Origin: Dimorphilus gyrociliatus
Lineage: Eukaryota > Animalia > Annelida
Assembly (NCBI GenBank): GCA_904063045.1
Contig: CAJFCJ010000004.1
Location: 675,713 to 739,712 of the forward strand
Direction of reading: 5' to 3'
Length of the DNA: 64,000 nucleotides
The notes under the pieces are model-generated. The model was not told the DNA's origin. It did not search any database and was given only the letters and a program-made list of their open reading frames with translations. Position numbers and translations under genes: made by a program. How positions within the stretch are numbered: the stretch's first letter is position 1; each line of letters begins with the position of its first letter. Below are positions 1,453-27,932 of the stretch, piece by piece.

Positions 1453-3156
1453 CTTTCTTTATCTATCAAGGCTGACAGTTTATCATTGAAATTGAATATA
1501 AAATAAAAATTAAACGCCATATTTCGTAAAGCTGATGACATTCTGTTTTCTACTTAAATAAAAGAGACAATAGTAAAAATTTGTATTTATCTTTTTGATT
1601 TTGTACAATGAAAAATATTCTATCGATAATATTTTTAAAGTATTTAAATTCGAGTTGAATACTCTGAGGTTTTGGTGAGAAAATTACTTGTACAGACTAT
1701 ATTTACTGTAAGTAAGCGGAGACGTATAGTATACACTTCAATGGTTACAGTAATTTGAAACTTTCTTGTAGCTTTTAGCACAATGTTATGAAGATTAACA
1801 TTAAAATATAATGATAATATTTAGAAAAAGATTCAAATAAACTTCAATATTTTGTTGATTTTGATTTAATTAAAGTTAAATCTTAATCTATAATTCTTTA
1901 TCGGATAATATATTTTATAGATATACAAACTTTGGTTACTGTGGATACGCCAGCGTTTTGTTCGTCATTAAATTCCTCATTATCGTCTAACATTGTTAGT
2001 AGAACCTGCTCAAAAACTGTTCTATTCAAATTTCACCTTAAAAATGCAATGAAAACAGATTGTAGCTTTCATATTTAAAACGATACCATTGGACGTTGAT
2101 TGGTTGACCTTTTTTCTTAGCTCCTCCTTTCGAATTTTATTGGCCAGTGTAAACTTAATCTCTATCTTTTCATAACGATTAAATTACGTAATTCTACCGT
2201 TTTTGGTAATTATTTTCATAAAAATATTAATCTCTTCTGGAATTTTTTTCATTTAGGAACAAAAGTTCAGTCATTTTTTGACATCTTGGAGTAGAATTTC
2301 TTCTGTCAGACGTTCATTTCATTAAATAAAACTACAAGTATATAAACGAAATCTAATTAACCTTATCGTTATCATAATTATAATGAATTAAGAACGTATT
2401 TTTGAATTAAAACATCATTTTGAGTTACTGTTTAACGAAATGTATTTACACTAAGAATAGCTTGGTATAACTGTATTTATGTTATTGAGGACAAATTTTG
2501 CATTGAATTTAGACGTTATTTATTAAAGTTGAGCAGCCAAATAGATATAAAGTATTCACGTTCCGCATCAGAAAGTTCTATTTATTGAAAAAGTATATTT
2601 TAAATGAAATGCAGAAGAGAGAATATTTGAAACTTTTACGATTGCTGTGGTTTATTTGACTCCTCCTTATTCATTCATATGTCATCAGTCGTAAAATTTG
2701 GATAAAAATCATAAACAAATGAAATGTTTACAACGGTAATAAAGACCCTTAAGGTAGAACGTGCGCGTTTGTAAAAAAAAATGGTGCATTCTATAAATGT
2801 CTCTTGGAAAGAAAGAGAAAAAATGACATATTGTGAGCTGTCGACCTTCAATTGAAGAATTCTGAGGAGAAATAGAATATGATAAGTTACGTCTTGAAGA
2901 GATATGAAGAAGGGTAGAATGCGGGATCTAGTGAAGATGCCGCCGAAATGACGTAGAAGAACCGACCCCTGACCTAAAAGCCATGGATACTGGCCATAGG
3001 AATTTTGCGGCAAGGAAATAGCGTCTGTTAAATAAGAAGAAAGGTGTTTCAACGGGCAAAAGATGAAATTTTCAGCGTCGTTTACATTTTATGATAGGCC
3101 GACAAAGAAGGCGGGTGTAAACCGTTAGATTTCAGGGCTATTCCGTTCGCATAAGC

Positions 3157-3165
3157 GGCACGTGC
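3157..3165. promoter_or_regulatory. Class B E-box GGCACGTGC (E(spl)/Hes high-affinity type)
   Basis: Matches the GGCACGTGY core, in a CpG-rich patch upstream of the Hes gene. Confidence 0.35.
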
Positions 3166-4680
3166 ACTTAACTTTAAAAAGGGGTGTATGTATGTCTTCA
3201 ACCCAAGATCTAAATGTAATTATGCCTAATGTGTTCCCTAAATTCTTTCTTAATATTTGTCCAATTTGTAACTTCTTAAGGGTAATTTCCTCCCTCTTTT
3301 CGCAAAATAGACACGATCCTTAATTTTTCGCAAAGTGATTAGACTGAAACATTATTTGTAAGTTAGTGATCTCTGTTAGAATTCTGTATGGCATATATAT
3401 AATGAAACCCAATACAAAATGCTTGGAATTGAGTTGCAAGTTGATGCCGACCACCCGGACTTTTAAGGAATATATTAAATGAACAATAATTTCCCTCTCT
3501 TTCGATGTCGACAGCCATTCGAACGTTTAAGGGACAAAACTGTCAACCAGCAGGAAAATTCTCTGTTAAATACATAAATTTTTTACTTTTCTTCTCTATA
3601 ATTAGTTTTTGGCTTAAATTTCATTCAAACTTGTAAACTTTGATTCTAAAGTTGAATTCTCTTTTGATAATTCGTTCGAAATATTAAATGATATAGAAAA
3701 GAAGGTTCTTTAGATAATCATCAATCAATTTTATCACGTACAAATGCCTTTAAATAGAAATTCTCTCAAACGATCAATTCATGTGTGAAACATATGGATT
3801 CAAGACGATTATGAAGGTTATTTGATGAATTTGGGCGTATTTTATTTTAAAAGGTTGCTTTTACTTGAAAAAAGTTGTAAATACCGTCTTTTACGCATTT
3901 ATCCACTCCTTTTTTTCACTCTAGCCGTAAGATATTACAATAAATTTGCATAATTTCCCCAGGTTTTTTTAGAAATGTTTATTCGGAGGAAATAGCCATT
4001 AATTTTACATTTCTTCGTATGAAATTCTCCTTGTTAGAAGGAGTAAAAGTTAAATATTCCTAAAGTGGGTGCTAATTAGGCCGTTTAGGCGGCATATATC
4101 CCGAAACTTTGATGGCCATTTACTCAATACGGAAACCTACGAGTAGTGTGAAAATGCCTAAAATCTTTCTCTATTTCCATTTTATTACCAACCGACAAAA
4201 GACTTGAAATAAACAGCCTCTAAACCTGAATATGTTAACAATTAGGACAAATTCTAAACATTATTTCCTATTCCTTTTGTTTCTGTATCCATAGTCAATA
4301 TTTTCCTTTTCTTTTATTTATTAATATTACAAATCTAAGCCTGTTAAAGGAGATAAGCAAGATATATATATATATATCTTTATGGAAGGTGTGTTTCAAA
4401 ATACTTGAAATAATTGAATCTATTCATCTATCTTCAATTGGCAGTGTAATGTATCAAATTTTATTTTTTCATCTCCTTCAAGTTCAAAGAAAACTGAAGA
4501 TTTTATTTATTCTTCTCTTTCTTATTTAAATTCTTTAATTTTAAGAAAACCCCGCAATCCAACTAGGAAGACTTAGAAAGCACGAATTTGGTCGGCAACT
4601 TTCTCTCTTTACAGAAATTGCGTATATAAAAAAAGATATTTAAAGGTGACGTTTGAACGGTCATTAACTTTTATGTAAAC

Positions 4681-4758
4681 TGTGAGAAACTTCCTAATTG
4701 GTAACTTTTTGAAGTGATAGTGAAGGTTAGCGACAAGAGGGCACGCGCCTGCACGCGC
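4681..4758. promoter_or_regulatory. Candidate enhancer: CSL-type site plus tandem class C Hes sites
   Basis: TGTGAGAA at 4681-4688, GGCACGCGCC at 4740-4749 and a second GCACGCG at 4751-4757. Confidence 0.45.
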
Positions 4759-5353
4759 TAAAGAAAAAATACAGAATATAGAACCAGTCTTTCAGATTCT
4801 CCCTTCGGCAAAAAGCTTTGGGAGAGATTGGAAGAATGAGAAGGAAAGTTGGGTGCTGTTCAAGTGTGCTCTGTTGACGGGACTTGTCAAAACGTTCGAA
4901 TAGTGTCAGAATTCCGTTCGAACACCTGCAATGATTCAATCAAGCGATCGCGGGGCGAGACCGTTCTGCTCGACCAGGCGTGGCAGGACGCCTAAAGTTA
5001 AGGCCTTTATTTTTAGTGTTCTATTCAATTTGTCGATTGATAAATTATGGTTTCTAATTCGCTGCTCTTTTCCATTCCCTGTGGCTTTTTTTTTTAACTT
5101 TTACTAATGAAAGATGTCTCGTTCTTGTCATTCGGAGCAATATGGTTATCTTATTACTAGACCCTCTTTATACATGTCTCGTTTTGCGTGTCATACGAAA
5201 ATGTCTAAATAATAGAAGAACTTTTGCTTCACTTGTTGCAGGTTTTCTTTTAAAGTTTTGAAACTTAAATGCTTATTTTGATAAGTTATAAAAGAATGTA
5301 TTTACATGTTAAAATTTAAGCATCAGAAGTATACTACGAATTACTTTTATCAC

Positions 5354-6232
5354 TTACGTTAAAGTAAAGTGACTAGAATGAGTTTTCAAATGTTCTCCTA
5401 TTCTTTCCTTAAGAATGTTATTAATATTTCGACAGCCTTCAACAGCACAGTCAAGTAGCTTTTCCAAATGATCAGCGTGTAATCGACCTTTCATTTGCAT
5501 GTAAGCAATTTGTTCATCTTTTGGTAAAAGGCCAACAATTAGAACAGCACTACCAGACGATTCCTCTACATAATTTACATCCACAACTGATTTCTCATCT
5601 ACTATTGTAGCAGAGCAGCAGGTGACAATGTCCTTTAGAGCAATACCTAAAATTTTTTTGTTCGTTTAAAATAGAGTAAATAAGAATTACATTTAAATCC
5701 TTACCAGCGTCAATTAGAGCTAGAGTTGAAGCATTAAGACAAGCACAGAAGTCGCTTCCATCGGATTGAACTATTTCTACGTATACATCAATTTGACATC
5801 GCGCGTATAAGTGGGACATAACAGCAGCATTTAATGCTTGAACCAAGTGCTATAAAAGAGTTAGCAGATGCATCAGATCGTCCTAATATAAAGAGCCTTA
5901 AAATTATATGAAATAGATAAGTGATGTACCTGATTCGTTTCGCTGGAATTTCGACCAAATTTCATATGAGTCTTTCTCTCAGAACTACTAAATGCACTCT
6001 TGCTAAATTGACAATTGATAACAGCTTTATCGGGATTAGAACGTCCCCTGCCGCCCTTAACTTCATGAGGTCCATAGACTGTAGCTAAAACTTTTGTGTT
6101 ACCCTGTTCTAGGTAGGCAGAGCCATCGGCGTTGGGAAAGACACCCAACCTCGTTTCTATACGTCTCAATTCTGTTGGTTTTCTTCCATCAAGGCGAAAG
6201 TTTTGATCTTTCAAAAGTTCCCATGCAGCCAT
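5354..6232 (-). CDS. EXOSC4: Exosome complex component RRP41 (3 exons: 6232-5930, 5849-5705, 5646-5354)
   Basis: RNase PH-fold motifs: FRLDGRKPTELRR, ADGSAYLEQGNTKVLATVYGPHE, QIDVYVEIVQSDG, NASTLALIDAG. All introns are GT-AG and in frame. Confidence 0.96.
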
Positions 6233-6690
6233 GGTAAATTTATAATATCGCTCGGGACACCGTATTGCAACCGGCAATTTGGAATGGAACAGTCAGCGAT
6301 TCTAACCTAGATAAAAGTCACAAATACATACATTTTGCAATTAAACTTTTTGATTAAAAGTTAACTTAAATATAGTTATATGTCAAATAAAAAAAAGAAA
6401 AACTCGATAATTGAAAACAATTAAAGATTAATAATCGAATGATGTATTGGTTCTGATGGAAATTTGCTACAAGATAAGAAACTTGTGAAAGCCGGGAAAA
6501 AATGTAAAGCTTTCATATTCTGTTTTTTGAAAAGCCCAAAAAGCTAATTTTATCTTTTTGAGCATCATATCTCAGCTTTTTTTCAGAATACATGAAACAT
6601 AGTTTCTGACCTTCCAAAAATATATTTTGTAAGGGGTTATGTATATAAATATATGATACTAAATACTTGAAGTTATATAAAAGCTCTAAA

Positions 6691-9170: not shown

Positions 9171-9622
9171 AATGTAAAAGTGACATACTATCGAGGTCTT
9201 TCGAATTCCGGAAATCAAACTGCCTTTGGCAAAAAACGGAATCTTGCCGATGGTTTTATTCTTACATTTTTAGGCTTACTTTTTAAGTACAAGTCATTAT
9301 TTTATTATCTACATCATTATTCAATAAAAATGTAATCGCAATTTATATTTCTTATTGAACATCAACTTTTACAGGGGCATTGTTTTATCAATATGTCTAT
9401 TAGTACGTCTGTTGTTGGTAACTTGTAGGATATAATGAGATTTCTACTTCAAATATTTAAATGGAAAAGGCTAAATATATAAATGACTAGCCCCGCTAAA
9501 GTCCTCATTTGTGGATATGCTAATTGTTTTTCTTCGACTGTCTTAAGTTAACACTTCCTATCGCGAAAACGAACAACTTCTCTAATTCATCAAATAAACA
9601 TTTATTTTTAAACCATCATTTC

Positions 9623-10289
9623 TTACTGAGGTTGTCCACCACCGCGTCCGAATCCTGATCCTCGTCCTCTGAATTGGAAATCTTGGGTAGATCCAGCGCC
9701 GGCTTCAGCGACCTTATCTCTTCTGTAAGCTGATCTTTCAGCATCAGCGCTAGCTGCGGCTCCTGATCTTGCTGCTTCTGGTTTCGGTCTTGGGCGAGCG
9801 GTCTCGGGTCTATTTTGTCTCTTCAAAGTAGCAGGGACGATCTCTGGTGGTAGACCCAAATAATCACGTAAATATTGGACACCGTCGTTGGTGAGGTACC
9901 TATAGAATGAAATGTCGTTGTAAATACTTTCTTATCTAGCAATGGGGCAAGACTTTCAGTTGACAATTAGTTGAACATTTTATGTTACAGCGCAATGTCG
10001 TCTGAGCAATGGAGAAATGCAATAGCACTTACCAATAATAGTGACGCCAAGCAAATTGTTCGGTCACGTAACCTCTAGATTTCAAAGACTGAAAAATAAA
10101 GAAATTGGATTTGAAGCTTTAAAAAAACAAATTTTCATTTCCACGCACTGTAAGAGCTTTGATAACATGAAGGTTAGGGACTGCCACATCCGGGTGCTTT
10201 GGGGAGAAAAAATCCTTCTTGGCAACCATAACACCTTCGTTGAAAAGGTATTCGTATATAAGTTGACGATTCTTCTTGGGCATCAACAT
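9623..10289 (-). CDS. RPS10: 40S ribosomal protein S10/eS10 (3 coding exons, introns about 10148-10089 and 10032-9900, plus a 5'UTR intron 10486-10291)
   Basis: [26 protein letters not shown]...[11 protein letters not shown]|[19 protein letters not shown]|[27 protein letters not shown]...[13 protein letters not shown]. Confidence 0.97.
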
Positions 10290-10514
10290 GCTGAAAAAAT
10301 ATGTCATTACTACATGTTGGGGGCGATAATAGGAAGAGGTGGTAACGTGTTGTATTTTTACGTAAAAACTTCACAAATTTTTAAATATTTCTGGTCAAGA
10401 ATATGTGTAATGTTATATTATACACAAAAAATGACTAAAATTTGAGAATAAACATGCGTTAAACTGCAAAATTTGTCATAAAGTACCTGACGGCGTGCAA
10501 CAATCCGAAATCTC

Positions 10515-10528
10515 GAGAAAAAGGAAGA
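10515..10528 (-). promoter_or_regulatory. 5' terminal oligopyrimidine (TOP/TCT) tract of RPS10
   Basis: Minus strand TCTTCCTTTTTCTC lies about 30 nt before a CAG|GTACTT donor at 10486. This is the typical arrangement of a ribosomal protein start site. Confidence 0.6.
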
Positions 10529-11351
10529 TGGACGCCGTATTTCCACGAGACTTAAAAATTCCACGTGACCGGAAAGAACTTGATGGCGCGAAATACGGCG
10601 AATGCAAACCTGGCATTTCCATCAACTCGAGATACTGCTTCACAAGAAAGTAATAATAATTTGGATAAATTGAAATAGATGGATGCTTGATTTAACAATC
10701 TCTGAAACCAAGATACTTATCAACTATGGTTTGTGTAATAAGGTATTCCGTAACTTATATAATATCCAGCCAATTGTATATAAAGAGTCGGGCGAAACCG
10801 GTTAATTTTTGTCCTCCACCGGTTGTAGCGTAGTCAATTCCATTTAAGCTCTTAATAGTATTCCACTGAAAGGATATGAATCAGAACACTGTTAAATATT
10901 TTCTATCTTTAAGTGCCTTAAAGTCACGAAGCTGTTATTTTTTTCACGAAACCTAACAAAGTAAGTTTGGACGTAAAATTTTTTAAGGGTTACTATATTC
11001 TCTAATTATAAGAGAAAAAATATGGTTAAATGCCAATATAAGTGTCAATGTAACAAAAAGTAATTGCATTAACCGAAAGAAATGGTTTATTGTTGTTTTC
11101 TGTTGAAAATAGCAAAAGTGACGTGTATTGTATATGTGCAAAACGACATGCTTTGCTACAGGTTTATTGTTATTTTCTATATTAAGCCTATATTGCTAAA
11201 GCGTCAGTGCTTCTATGTTATATGCATTGAACCCGGATATATACGAAAAAACGCAGCATCACGTGACTAGCCGTTAACCGCCATGTTATTACGTAAAGTT
11301 ATATAACCCATTCTGTCAGTCTCTTTTTCACTGCACATTCCTGCAATACTC

Positions 11352-11943: not shown

Positions 11944-14913
11944 ATGTATCAGCATGTTAGTGAAACAGGGAATGGAGCGGATGCTCAGCCAAAACAACCT
12001 GTAACGAGTACAAACGTCTCAACAGGTAAGGCAGTTTATCTATTAAATAGTATTAACACTGGACAATATATTTAAAATATTTCAAATTCGCAATATGGTA
12101 GGGCTACTTGGGAAGTGTATCATTGACATTAAATTTCATTCATACTGTTTCTATTCAGGTGATACTATAAAAGCCTTGTATTTCTTCAATATACATGTAC
12201 ATTGTAAAATACTCTATGCGCCATGTATGCATTTGGAATTTAAGGAATGCAAATGGTATTAAATTCTGAAAAAATTTCAACGCCTCATTGAATTAAAATC
12301 ATTAATATTCTATGTATTTAAATGAAAATTAGAGATTTCAATTTGGATAAGGGAGTTTATTAATACAGACCTGTCATTGAAGTACTTAATTCACTATACT
12401 TAGACTATTATTTGTAGCAAAAGCTTTGTTTGTTCGAAAGTCACCATGTATATTTCTCCCACGGTTAAAGTGTGCTCCCTTCAATTTGAATACTATTGCA
12501 TTGACCCATGAAGGACGAGACATATTTTGAAATATATCTGTAACCCCAACAGAGAAATCGGATTCGCAGACAGGTTTTACGTTTCATTGCCAAAGTGACA
12601 GCAATGCTTCTTTTCATCAAACTCCACCACAATCACCCTACTCTACAAATCATCATACTCCTGTTGCAATGCAATCACCTGAAATAATTTTCTTGCCCAA
12701 CGATGATACGCAGTCGTTTGATCTTAGTCATTTCTCCAATACTGATGATTCCCAGCTACAAATGCCTACAAATATGCTACCTCCACCAGTCCCTATTAGT
12801 CAATCGCCTCCACCACCTCCACGGATATATAAACCTTGCGTAGTGTGTGGGGATAAGAGTTCTGGATATCATTGTAAGTATTCAATTGTATTTTTACTAT
12901 GTTTATTGTTTATGAATAGCTATTTGTATAACTATTAGAACTTAACACTTTGATAAAAGACGGATAATTTTATTTGCAAATTCGTGCATTTCTTCAACTG
13001 TTATCGGTAAATGTACAAAGCACATACTTTGCGTAAACAAATACGCTCTTATTTGTAAATGCTAAGTCGGAAATCTACAGACAGTGCTCTGTTGTTAAAG
13101 TATATACACTAAGAGAGTATATACAAAAGTTTATGACTGCCATCTGGCGTCTCCACTCTATTCTGTCGATTGGAAATTGCTTTATTTTTTCCAGACTAGA
13201 GCAACTGTCATCTTTCTATATAAAATTACTATACCCGGAAGGTATTTTTCGTAATATCAACGCCAATTTTCTTATCAATATTTCTTATTCGTTGGAAAGA
13301 AACTGGCAATTAGTTTTCAAACAACTACCTTGTACATAGCTGTATGCTTTTACCTATAACTTAATCCAAATTCCTTAATTAATTCTATTACACTTTTCAC
13401 CAGATGGCGTATCATCCTGTGAAGGTTGCAAGGGTTTCTTTCGAAGATCCGTGCAGAAAAGCATGCAGTATACTTGTCATAAAGAAGGAAAGTGTCAAGT
13501 TAATAAAATAACCAGGAATCGATGTCAGTATTGTAGATTTCAGAAATGTTTCGACAAGGGAATGTCAAAAGAAGGTATTCTATAATTCTGTTTGTAGTCA
13601 AACTGTACACTAATCTTATCGATCTTTAAGCTGTGAGAAATGATAGAAATAAAAAGAAAAAGCAGTCAAAACAAGAAGGAGCCATTTCTCAGTCAGCGGA
13701 AGATTTGAGTCCAGAGGAAGAGGAGATAATTAACAGGGTACAATTTGAAGTGTATTATTTTTGCAAACTTAAAATAAATAATTTTCCATTATAATTATCA
13801 AGGTAGTACAAGCGTACGAGGAAACGATTTTAAGCGATGATATCGGCTCATTTGATGAAGAAGCGTTAGGAACCACAAATGGAAATGGTGCTCATCGAGC
13901 GAATGGTGATAAACCATCAAAGCTCAACGTCAAAGATCAAGTGGATGAAGCTTTGGAGAATGGAACCTTAGTTTGGGGTGTTCTCAAAGAATTATCCACT
14001 CGGGGACTAGTTCAAATCGTTGAATTTGCAAAAAGAACGCCATCTTTCAATTCCATTACAACAAGTGATCAGATTGTGCTTATAAAAGCTGCCTTATTGG
14101 AAATTCTGGTTTGTTTTTAGTATTTTATTGGCAATCTTTTTAATGATTTGATAAAGCAGTCTTTTATCTTAATAAATGAAGTTGTAAATTTAAGTAGAGT
14201 TTTTTGCAAACTACGTGCGAAAGAATAAATAAATATATCTAAGTATATTTAAATAATAACACTTAGTTGATTGTACAGATTATAAGACTCATCAGCTCTT
14301 ATTCGGATCTGGATAATGCACTCTCATTTGATGGTGGCGTGATGTTGACAGATAAACAAGCTGCTGCTTGTGCTTTCAGTCACGTAGCTCAAAATATTTT
14401 CCGTCTCGCCAAACAATTTAGCAATTATGATATGGATTCAACTGAGTATGCTCTCATCTCTGCGTTATGTTTGTACAGTTCAGGTGAATAGTAAAAATTT
14501 TCATTTCTATATGTTTATTTATAATTTATTTTATAATTATCTATAGATCATTATACATTAGAACAATCGGATCAGATAGATAAGATTCAGGGACCTATTC
14601 TGGCTGCATTTAAGCATTATTCAAGGAGAAAGAGAAGGAATAAACCTCATATATTTACGGAGATGCTTTTAAAATTAGCCGATTTAAGAGATATCAGTAT
14701 AACTGGTAAAGTTTATAGATATCTTTTTTTTACCAACCTTTATTTAATGATAACATTTACAATTTTTTAGGTGCAGAATGCATTTTAGATTTAGCTCGTG
14801 AAAGAAAATTTGAATTACCTGCTTTAGTTAAAGAGATGTTTACTAGAAATGAAAATGTCTCACTACCTCCACACGTTATTAACAAAGGTCTTTTATTCAA
14901 ACCGTCAGTATAA
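11944..14913 (+). CDS. RAR: Retinoic acid receptor (NR1B), about 8 coding exons
   Basis: [21 protein letters not shown]|[26 protein letters not shown]...[24 protein letters not shown]|[12 protein letters not shown] is RAR-type from the pre-DBD region through the T/A box. The LBD contains [32 protein letters not shown] and AF-2-like LPALVKEMF. The start ATG is inferred. Confidence 0.92.
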
Positions 14914-15850
14914 ATTGTTACTTGATTTTATATATAGAAGCTTGTATTATTAACTTTTCAAAAAATGTTACAGGTCTTTCAAGCCCATTAAAAAGGAAAC
15001 AGGTTGACCTGCATGTAATTTTAAAAAATATTTTATACAATACTGATATACATATGCTTATATCTATGTATAATGTGAGAGAATTATTGTTTTTCAAAAA
15101 CTCCTTTTTGATATTTCGTTTCATGGTTTTCCATAGATATTATCAGTACAACAGGGTATATAATTATCAACTGCAATTTTTGACCAATTTTAGTGAGATT
15201 TTTATATCATATAGAGGACCGGTGATTAAATTATACATGAAATTTAACAAGTATATGGTGCACAATTACTATACTTTCTACCTCATATTGTACATCTTAT
15301 AACTTAGTCTCTTTTTATATTTTGCTAAATAAACAAGAATTAATTTTATTATGTTCTTATTGCATATTAAAAATTGTTAGATTTTTAATAAATCATGCAT
15401 TTTCTTTTCTTTTATACTTTTCTTACTTGAATTAAGAAGAGTTTTTTTGTTATCTTTCTCTCTATCTCACCCTCTCTCTGTGAATTAATGGATATGTAAG
15501 TTAAATAAAAAAGAAGTTGCATGCGAAATTTTTATAAAAGAAAGAAGTATTAAAAAGAGATAACACGGCTATTTTCCGCATTTGAGAAAGTATGCTTTGA
15601 AGTCTTTTTTCTTTTTTTTTGCACTGATGAATTAATTGTTATTCGTTTGAAAATTATAGCCTATATTGATTTCTTTTTACTTGTGTATTATCTTTTTTTT
15701 ATTAAATATATTTAGTACAGGTGACTTAATTAATCCTTTTTGATTATTCTGTAATATTCAAATGTATTAGAAAACATTTTTTTATGGACGGATTAATAAA
15801 TTTTTGAGACAATATATAAAAATTGTATAAAGAATAATAGAAATAGTCTT

Positions 15851-18800: not shown

Positions 18801-21800
18801 AAGTTTGAGGTTTATCTCAATATAGATCGACCTATAATCCTAAAAGAAATGACTTACACTGGAGGCTCTCTAATGGGATTTGATCTTACAGGAATATTAA
18901 CCGCTCTGATAATATTTGCTAATAATTTAACATTTAAGCCTTGGAGAACTTGTGGTGGTTGTTTCTTTAATGGTTTCCTTGTTACTAAGAGTTTTCTTGT
19001 TCGAGGTTTAAATACGTTCTTTATAAACGGTAGTAAATTGCTAGGAAAAAGATTTGTTTTAAGAAATCATTTTCAATAATGAAGAGAATACCACTATCTC
19101 AACTTACTCAACTGCTGGCATAGGATCTTCGCTTATAATATCCTGAAAGGTTTTTCGATGAGAGGCCATTTTGAAACGGACCATAATTTGTTCTTTAACA
19201 GCTTGCATATATTGGCTAACTTGACTACGCTGTTCTTCTCTTGGTTTCTTTTCTAGATGTTTTCTATCATCGTAACTTCGGAATACCTCATCTTTAATTT
19301 CCCTATCGAACGGTGGGATATTTTTAGAGTTGTGAAATTCTTTAACTTCTTGCTCTCGAAGTGAAATTAATCGAAAACGCTTTGAACGTTCAATATCTTC
19401 ATCATCCGCGAAATCAAATTCGGTCTGTAATTGATCTAACCGGAAGACTTGACGTCCAATATTAGCAGCAGTTTGATTTGGAAGTTGTTCCTAAACATAA
19501 AAACATACTATTTAAAACGCTCATTATCAAATAGTAAATAAATTTATTAATACCTTTTTGTATAGCATAAGATCCGCATCATTCGGATCGTTTGGATCAA
19601 GACGAGCATTAATGATCCATTTACGAAATTTATCCATATCAGCAATTCCTGCAGCACCAATGGCCGAAATAGGATCATTTCCTTTTGAAATGTCTCTGAA
19701 AGAAAGTTCTCATATGTATAATTGTAATTAAAAAATTGATTTCTTCGAGAGAATGACGATATGAAAGGAATATTCTTGCAGAGGTTACTTTTCGGTTGTA
19801 TAATTTTCAATAGGCTTAGTCAATAGTTATCGTATAAATATTTATGGAAACTAAAGAAGTAATTTATCTATCCAGGCACTAAAAAGAAATACACAACATA
19901 CCCGTATCCACCAGATGGAGCGGGTGAAAGGACATTTCCATCCTCATCAACAGCCCACGAGACGGATGCCCAAAGGTTACCCGTGGTATTTAAATTAATG
20001 TAGTTATTACTATTAGAGCCAACATTGATTGGGTGTCCTTTATTAGGAAGGAAAAGTTTCATTTATTCAGAATGAATACTAGTGTAAAAATACAAAATAT
20101 TCATACCACTTCCAACTCCCTCGTGATTGTATGTAAATTTCAAAACACTACTAAACGAATTTTGGTCCAATTGGACATTTTCATTAGTTACATTTGCCTC
20201 TGGAATACCAGTAAAAATCTGAGTTAGCAGATTTGTCGTTAATCTGATAGTTTCGTAGACATCTAGACGTATATTCTCTGGCCATCTTACAATCCTTGTC
20301 TCAAAAACTTGAGCAAATCTTATGGTAAATTCTTGACCTAATGGCCTTTACAAAATAGAGATATTAACAATCATCAATAGAAGTAAACACTTATTACTTA
20401 CTTTGAGGACGTCTTACAAACTTCCTTATTGTCAAAGTAGATTTTAATGTATAGTTTGCATTTGTCAACTTCATTCCTTCGCAGTTGTTCACTCCTGTAG
20501 AACAAGAATATTTTAAGACTATAAATTAAGAGATAAAATAAAATAAACGAACTTTGGACAAGTATTTGTAGCGGTAATAGTTCCAGAGGAGGAGAGTTCG
20601 GGATGAAGGATATGTTCGCCTTTTGTGAAAAGCAATTAAATTAGTTATTGAAATAATATTTCAGAATTAAACCAAGAATCATACCTGGAAGTCTTCGGAT
20701 TTTGGAGTATAAATCCAAAACTTTTTGTTTTACATCTTCTTGATCAATAGGCGACGGTTTTATTGGCTTTTCAATTTGGGGAGCATTAATTATGTCCAAA
20801 TCCTGTCTTTCTTGTTCCTTTGTTAAAGAAAACAAAAGCTGATAAGAAATTAAAATTTTACGGTGACCTAGTTCAAAAGATATTCAATCTATGACTAAGA
20901 AAAGAAACGTGTATTTTTTTTATTATATAGCTATTATTCACAATCATCTATATTAAGAATAAGAGACTATTAAAAGAAATACGATTCATATAATTGCACT
21001 AATTCTACATATTTGAAAGATAAATATTCGCATTTTGTTCATAGTGTTTTCTTGCAGGAAATAAATTTAGAGTATTTGGATATAGATGATTTTCGTCAGT
21101 ATTTTTTTTCAAAGCATATCGTATACCATAAAGTGCTGTTAATGCTAAACATAGAACGCCTAGAACGCTTATTATCATTGTAAGAGAATTCAAATGGGTT
21201 TCTAATTCTTTTATAGCACTAATGAAAAATGTCACTTTGTCATTATATATATTACTATGCTCAGGAAAGAACGTACTCTTTTCTAGGAAATTTCAGTAAT
21301 GAACTTTGGTTCTTTGAATTTTGTAGGTTAACTTTTGAGTCGTGACTTAAGTTCTCTTTTTTAGATAGAGAATTTGTAATATTAGTCATGTTTAGATTAA
21401 CGACTGTTGAAGTTATACTGGTGCTCTTTGATTTGTACAGATTAACAATCAGAAAGAAAATCAACAGCACCATTGTGATTTTCTCAAATACAGTTTTTAA
21501 AAATGAATAATACGTCATAACTTATTATTAAGTATAAGTAGTTAGTTACCTCATCTTCTTCAGTATCTATCGCCTCTTCTTCTTGCTCTTCTTCCCCGCG
21601 TTTCTTTTTGGTTTGGCGTTTAAGACGTTTCTTTTCTCTTATCTTTTCTCGTTTACGAGCTTCTTTCTATTAGAATTGAAATTGCAACAATATGAAAACA
21701 ATTCAACATGAATCAGTATCTTTTAACAAACTCTAGCTTTTGCTTGTTCGTCATATCTGGCTCTCTCTTCTTTGTATTTTTCTAATGCTAACTTGTAATT

Positions 21801-24946: not shown

Positions 24947-27932
<2,986 letters not shown>

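Follow-up and report, generated by a model that had tools for sequence, protein, structure and literature searches.

A small single-pass membrane protein probably encoded by a gene nested on the same strand within a long CC2D2A intron of Dimorphilus gyrociliatus

The CC2D2A locus and its long intron

The sequence analysed here is a stretch of 64,000 nucleotides (nt) from the annelid Dimorphilus gyrociliatus (contig CAJFCJ010000004.1, positions 675,713 to 739,712, forward strand), referred to as the window. It includes the ciliary transition-zone gene CC2D2A, and our subject is one long intron of that gene, which probably contains a second, complete gene on the same strand. The host is a multi-exon gene on the minus strand of the window, with exons matching, in order, the N-terminal C2, the C2 and the CEP76-type C-terminal domains of CC2D2A. 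The single-exon Pfam matches were PF15625 (E 1.9e-4), PF00168 (E 7.6e-3) and PF24652 (E 8.8e-12), the scores of the first two being below the Pfam curated cut-offs. PF15625 and PF24652 are also recorded for the orthologous CC2D2A open reading frames (ORFs) of a related species, whose longest contig, L006, comes from a 25.6-kb record and served for most of the comparisons below. The window has a GC content of 27-36% and very short introns; the D. gyrociliatus genome measures 73.8 Mb, its introns have a median length of 66 bp, and it is without trans-splicing or operons (PMC7854359).

The exon structure of the host was taken from X1, a transcriptome and the sole public run with this stretch, in which one contig of 4113 nt maps to the window as 15 spliced pieces. 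This contig joins 20817 to 21550 across an intron of 732 nt, with ends that read CT..AC on the plus strand, that is, GT..AG on the minus strand. Thirteen of the 14 other introns in the contig are 46-69 nt long, and the remaining one, the second-longest (19696-19901, minus strand), has 206 nt. An initial annotation of this DNA had put the long intron at about 700 nt, roughly ten times the local norm, which agrees with the contig.

The 732-nt intron is present as a single copy in the genome, and neither of the nested exons described below has a paralogue; the only other genomic match to them had E 0.33 and was interrupted by a stop. A search of the intron against Rfam gave no family at E up to 1. 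A repeat or an RNA gene as the content of the intron was ruled out by the single copy, the lack of paralogues and the lack of an Rfam family.

The features of the region are listed below in the direction of transcription, with nonsynonymous and synonymous differences (pN and pS) and their ratio (omega) referring to the comparison with the related species, and TM standing for transmembrane.

21550..21666, minus strand: CC2D2A exon 5' of the long intron, ending ...EEDE in phase 0; placed by X1 joints, 68% amino-acid (aa) identity to the relative's exon.
20818..21549, minus strand: 732-nt host intron with the entire nested gene; the X1 contig joins 20817 to 21550.
21516..21518, minus strand: alternative in-frame upstream ATG, 45 nt further 5', which would add 15 residues ahead of the leader.
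21483..21484, minus strand: AG of a proposed alternative acceptor, GAG/AAA; in frame, not conserved, not in RNA contigs.
21277..21473, minus strand: nested exon 1, coding; ATG at 21473-21471, 65 codons plus 2 nt.
21219..21276, minus strand: nested-gene intron, 58 nt, phase 2; donor AAGA/GTACGT, acceptor TTTTTCATTAG, GT-AG.
21005..21218, minus strand: nested exon 2, coding; 1 nt plus 70 codons for an ecto-juxtamembrane segment, the TM helix and about 39 aa of cytoplasmic tail, then TAG at 21007-21005.
21083..21178, minus strand: TM helix and basic juxtamembrane segment, the most conserved block; pN 0.134 versus pS 0.79.
20919..20924, minus strand: AATAAA, a possible poly(A) signal 81 nt past the stop; weak, being a common hexamer that is absent from the relative's 3' flank.
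20685..20817, minus strand: CC2D2A exon 3' of the long intron; placed by X1 joints, 70% aa identity to L006 10716-10847, omega 0.11.

The predicted nested product has 136 aa (65 residues, one from the split codon, and 70). Its start codon lies in a good context, ACAATGG, and exon 1 encodes a hydrophobic leader followed by an S/T/N/K-rich segment with four N-glycosylation sequons (NMT, NIT, NLS and NQS). Exon 2 encodes one hydrophobic 19-mer with a Kyte-Doolittle value of 2.38, then IRYALKKN, then a tail with several tyrosines. The initial annotation had described two ORFs joined in frame by a 58-nt GT-AG intron, with a product of about 136 aa that combined a leader, sequons, one TM helix, a basic segment and a tyrosine-containing tail; the sequence and its translations agree with this description throughout. 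It had also pointed to a downstream AATAAA. The hexamer is indeed present at 20924, but it carries little evidential weight, because AATAAA occurs here at a frequency of 2.2 per kb per strand.

A counterpart in a related species

An exhaustive phmmer search with exon 2 against 1.84 billion protein representatives returned exactly one match, P0001 (55 aa, 60% identity, E 1e-13). P0001 is encoded on genomic contigs (L005-L008) that were assembled from four public runs, all of a single related species. On L006, where the CC2D2A exons align in order, the nested gene sits between the orthologous CC2D2A exons and on the host strand, in an intron of 819 nt (9897-10715) with a GC content of 20.5%, versus 26.8% for the long intron of D. 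gyrociliatus. The relative's exon 1 consists of ATG plus MKSVKFMITITLISLVES, which resembles a textbook leader, and then a K/N/E-rich segment with the sequons NFS, NET and NKT. Its nested intron is 75 nt long, GT-AG and in phase 2, with an acceptor, TTTTCATTATAG, that resembles TTTTTCATTAG, and its exon 2 reads FKEETKYQSDLIMMIISILGILCLALTAIFGIRYALRKNIDDNKQYLNTKDIYNSRKFFEQNRNNFYW followed by a stop. In the relative the host donor and the nested ATG are 104 nt apart.

The two-exon structure and the position and phase of the nested intron are therefore identical in both species. In each of them, an ORF of at least 56 codons opens with ATG and a hydrophobic leader and ends at a GT donor whose phase fits exon 2. 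The same-strand nested membrane-protein gene proposed by the initial annotation thus recurs in the relative in its structure, its phase, its leader start and its TM sequence, and of the three findings that the annotation had named as counting against a gene, the lack of a conserved ORF in relatives is clearly contradicted. As a separate observation, the 3' flank of the relative's intron includes a 51-codon open frame (from L006 10559) that has no D. gyrociliatus counterpart.

Selection and coding statistics

Substitutions were counted by the method of Nei and Gojobori. In the CC2D2A exons flanking the long intron pS was 0.67-0.80, indicating that synonymous sites are near saturation between the two species. 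Nested exon 2 had an omega of 0.25. Within it, the TM and juxtamembrane block (exon 2 codons 14-45) gave pN 0.13 versus pS 0.79, and identity at the first, second and third codon positions was 0.78, 0.88 and 0.50. The helix, MIIS[VI]LG[VI]LCLALTA[LI][YF]G, is almost invariant and is followed by IRYAL[KR]KN, and in the tail D-[DE]-N-x-x-Y-x-N-T and RK..EQN are common to both species. DNA similarity between the species was confined to the same exon, with z = 10 for exon 2 versus 0.8 for exon 1, 0.1 for the 5' flank and -0.4 for the 3' flank. Alignment of the 5' and 3' intron flanks for a promoter or a terminator gave nothing beyond AT-richness. Conservation of the ORF together with the codon-position pattern indicates that this is a genuine coding gene, on which purifying selection acts, most strongly on the membrane helix.

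The chance of finding such frames was estimated from 5000 dinucleotide-preserving shuffles of the 732-nt intron. The longest open frame in the shuffles averaged 57 codons, and one of at least 95 codons appeared with P = 0.014; in none of the 5000 did one strand carry two open frames of 86 codons or more. With the acceptor fixed, P was ~0.004 per species for an upstream ORF that starts with ATG, is splice-compatible and has at least 50 codons, and it fell to 0.00025 when a hydrophobic N-terminus was also required. By codon usage, exon 2 scored above chance ORFs of matched composition (P<0.003). The features of the ectodomain weigh little by themselves, because exon 1 consists of the very residues for which AT-rich DNA codes. 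The lack of stop codons in both frames does carry weight as evidence against chance.

These tests bear directly on the reading in which there is no functional gene, the frames being chance ORFs in an AT-rich intron, or an unexpressed and decaying relic, and the intron being long for another reason such as a regulatory element. Long intronic regions with peaks in the assay for transposase-accessible chromatin (ATAC) are reported for this genome (PMC7854359), which would suit such an element, and the residues that dominate exon 1, namely N, K, S, I, L and F, are what AT-rich DNA would yield. X1 has no contig in the intron, and other long unexplained ORFs occur nearby (14883-15299). Against these points stand the shuffle tests, the fact that both species have kept the ORFs open with synonymous divergence near saturation, and the codon-position signature of purifying selection in an intron of which the rest cannot be aligned. 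On balance we regard the absence of a functional gene as very unlikely.

Independent gene, shorter gene or host isoform

The reading that we prefer, and hold to be probable, is that of an independent, lineage-restricted gene on the same strand as CC2D2A and inside its enlarged intron, with two coding exons and a type I single-pass membrane protein as its product. Several results weigh against it. The between-species comparison rests on a single relative, and in that comparison the exon 1 protein could not be aligned, having no sequence similarity. Exon 1 codon usage was also indistinguishable from that of chance ORFs. The host donor is a mere 76 nt from the nested ATG, with no conserved promoter motif in between, and AATAAA is absent from the relative's 3' flank. 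In X1 the CC2D2A mRNA was assembled but no contig, spliced or unspliced, lay in 20840-21509, although contigs cannot show absence; expression of the nested gene may be restricted by stage, sex or cell type. None of the 1.84 billion protein representatives is the full-length spliced product of either species, and a word search with the 95-codon exon 2 frame had no match among proteins of 52-166 aa. What we propose below on function is inferred from the conservation pattern only.

The behaviour of exon 1 raises the possibility of a shorter gene, in which only exon 2 codes, starting at the conserved methionine (MIISVLG..., 57 aa; 55-57 aa in the relative), so that the product would be a micropeptide with an N-terminal anchor and a cytosolic tail, and what we call exon 1 would be 5' leader or non-coding. 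Conservation does begin at that methionine, the 13 codons before it having an omega of about 0.44, and the public gene call P0001 starts there too; the unalignable sequence and chance-like codon usage of exon 1 point the same way. However, each species has an ORF of 56 codons or more that begins with ATG and a hydrophobic leader and ends in a phase-matched donor, the chance of which is 0.025-0.4% per species, and the nested intron is conserved both in its phase and in the sequence of its acceptor. Nor would a rapidly changing exon 1 be surprising in a type I protein, among which fast-evolving short glycosylated ectodomains are common. We therefore consider a single-exon micropeptide unlikely.

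The short distance between host donor and nested ATG could also be explained if the nested exons had no promoter of their own. The initial annotation had noted that a GAG acceptor at 21483 might splice them onto the N-terminal third of CC2D2A as an alternative 3' end. Such an isoform would run from the exon that ends at 21550 through this acceptor and the 58-nt intron, and would have a membrane-anchored tail ended by intronic polyadenylation. The acceptor is in frame as claimed, and so is the 21550/21482 junction; the implied intron (21549-21483) would have 67 nt, a typical length, and a promoter within 76 nt would not be needed. The isoform itself is not supported. The 13 open codons upstream of the relative's ATG are without any AG, so the fusion could not be made there in the same way. 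GAG was found at 0 of the 15 confirmed host acceptors, and the 21550/21482 junction was not seen in the X1 contigs. Moreover, the conserved feature is an ATG directly before a leader-like segment, and such a segment would serve no purpose except at an N-terminus. An alternative CC2D2A 3' end is accordingly highly improbable.

For an independent gene, a separate promoter is the most likely arrangement, since D. gyrociliatus is without trans-splicing or operons (PMC7854359). This promoter would lie ahead of the ATG, in the 76 nt that follow the host donor, or else within the host exon, and transcription would end inside the intron. Because AATAAA is found in D. gyrociliatus but not in the relative, read-through into the host exons may occur instead.

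Searches for a protein family

Further searches, for which individual exons and natural open frames served as queries, left the family unrecognised, as it had been in the initial annotation. With exon 2 of either species, all Pfam matches at E up to 10 were noise below threshold (T3SS_TC, 16.6 bits; TAFH, 13 bits). The sole match of a profile search of the PDB, also at E up to 10, was a TM peptide of 35 aa (E 0.27). The best score among ESM Atlas features was 0.75, which is below the meaningful level, and a scan of JGI metagenomes with the exon 2 alignment produced 600 pattern matches, of which 0 were confirmed. A word search with P0001 returned only itself, one with the ORF of the downstream CC2D2A exon returned no candidates, and the D. 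gyrociliatus exon ORFs, looked up as exact sequences, were not on record in public assemblies.

The KCNE family (ISK_Channel, PF02060) was tried as a specific candidate and rejected: exon 2 of neither species had a match to it in Pfam at E up to 10, and the PDB search returned no KCNE chain.

Discussion

Predicted protein and how it might work

The N-terminus of the predicted protein, a candidate signal peptide, and its TM segment are hydrophobic in both species. Hydrophobic N-terminal 11-mers span residues 2-12 in D. gyrociliatus (Kyte-Doolittle 3.15) and residues 6-16 in the relative (2.53), and the TM 19-mer, at 2.38 and 2.84 respectively, is followed in both by the basic IRYAL[KR]KN. AlphaFold predicted exon 2 as one confident helix over residues 2-45, with mean predicted local distance difference test (pLDDT) values of 88, 96 and 95 for the three 10-residue blocks of residues 1-30. 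All sequons, four in D. gyrociliatus and three in the relative, lie ahead of the TM helix, though chance alone would give sequons in N/S/T-rich sequence.

From these features a working mode can be proposed. The short hydrophobic leader would direct the protein into the endoplasmic reticulum, where the ectodomain (about 50-60 aa, cysteine-free and fast-evolving) would probably be N-glycosylated. The TM helix carries small residues (S, G, C/L, T/A, G) at a spacing of 3-4 residues on one face. A stripe of this kind is typical of single-pass accessory or regulatory subunits that act by helix-helix packing in the membrane. The conserved helix might thus pack on another membrane protein, making the product a small accessory or regulatory subunit. 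Its tail of about 35-40 aa may recruit a cytosolic partner through a tyrosine motif, with D-[DE]-N-x-x-Y-x-N-T and RK..EQN as candidate docking sites.

A more specific proposal, which we offer as speculation and think unlikely to hold as a whole, is that the gene is the founder of a dinophilid-specific family of single-pass accessory subunits. The docking partner of the invariant small-residue helix would be a channel, a transporter or a receptor, perhaps in ciliated cells. The retention of the gene on the sense strand within CC2D2A, despite divergence that is close to saturation, could then reflect shared regulation.

Comparison with known systems

No search supported a likeness of the product to the KCNE subunits. 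KCNE/MinK (ISK_Channel) and FXYD proteins, which are small single-pass accessory subunits of channels and pumps, are of about 100-170 aa, with a short, cysteine-free, N-glycosylated ectodomain, a strongly conserved TM helix, a basic juxtamembrane stretch and a short tail, and the resemblance of the product to them serves as a lead only. In contrast to a member of either family, the product had no Pfam match and no KCNE or FXYD chain among PDB matches at E up to 10, and it lacks the FXYD motif. Membership of the product in KCNE or FXYD is thus not supported, and only the general way of working is borrowed from them, by analogy.

The layout, a same-strand nested gene filling an oversized intron, is already known and is an ordinary kind of nested gene. 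As in other animal genes nested on the same strand, a complete small gene occupies one host intron of about ten times the local norm and is kept in a relative; the present gene differs in having an intron of its own and in encoding an orphan protein, and it is known here from genomic sequence. With orphan small membrane proteins and micropeptides it shares its short length, its make-up of mostly one TM helix plus low-complexity parts, and its lack of any relative outside one close lineage among the 1.84 billion representatives. Unlike orphan micropeptides, it has two exons, shows purifying selection on its helix, and is not a new ORF of a single genome.

Significance

To the compact genome of D. 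gyrociliatus, a miniature annelid used as a model, the nested gene adds a conserved and probably unannotated gene that had no matching protein in the public sets searched. It explains one of the rare long introns of a genome in which the median is 66 bp, in keeping with a tendency of long introns in D. gyrociliatus to contain something, either nested genes or regulatory elements. It also illustrates cleanly how selection on a short orphan membrane protein can be confined almost entirely to the TM helix, and its product is a tractable candidate for a new accessory subunit.

Neighbouring genes and other open frames

Upstream of CC2D2A and in opposite orientation to it lies a GH47 alpha-mannosidase gene, at 24947-27929 (plus strand) in the window and at 2860-6381 (minus strand) on L006, with 76% aa identity between the species in its first large exon. 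The GH47-CC2D2A order is common to both species, indicating that local synteny is conserved.

On L006, at 9549-9953 (plus strand), the short CC2D2A intron between the two exons 5' of the long intron is free of stops and reads through in frame. Public gene calling fuses these two exons and the intron into a 134-aa 'protein', an instance of how prokaryote-style calls mislead here.

In the space that separates the CC2D2A 3' end from a RAR-like gene, the window contains a Y/N/F/I-rich open frame of 139 codons (14883-15299, plus strand; 126 aa from a TTG start). A tblastn search with this frame found no counterpart on L006, which covers the area only in part. The frame could be a chance ORF, an untranslated region or another small gene; antisense to it, at 14918-15124, lies an ORF of 68 aa.

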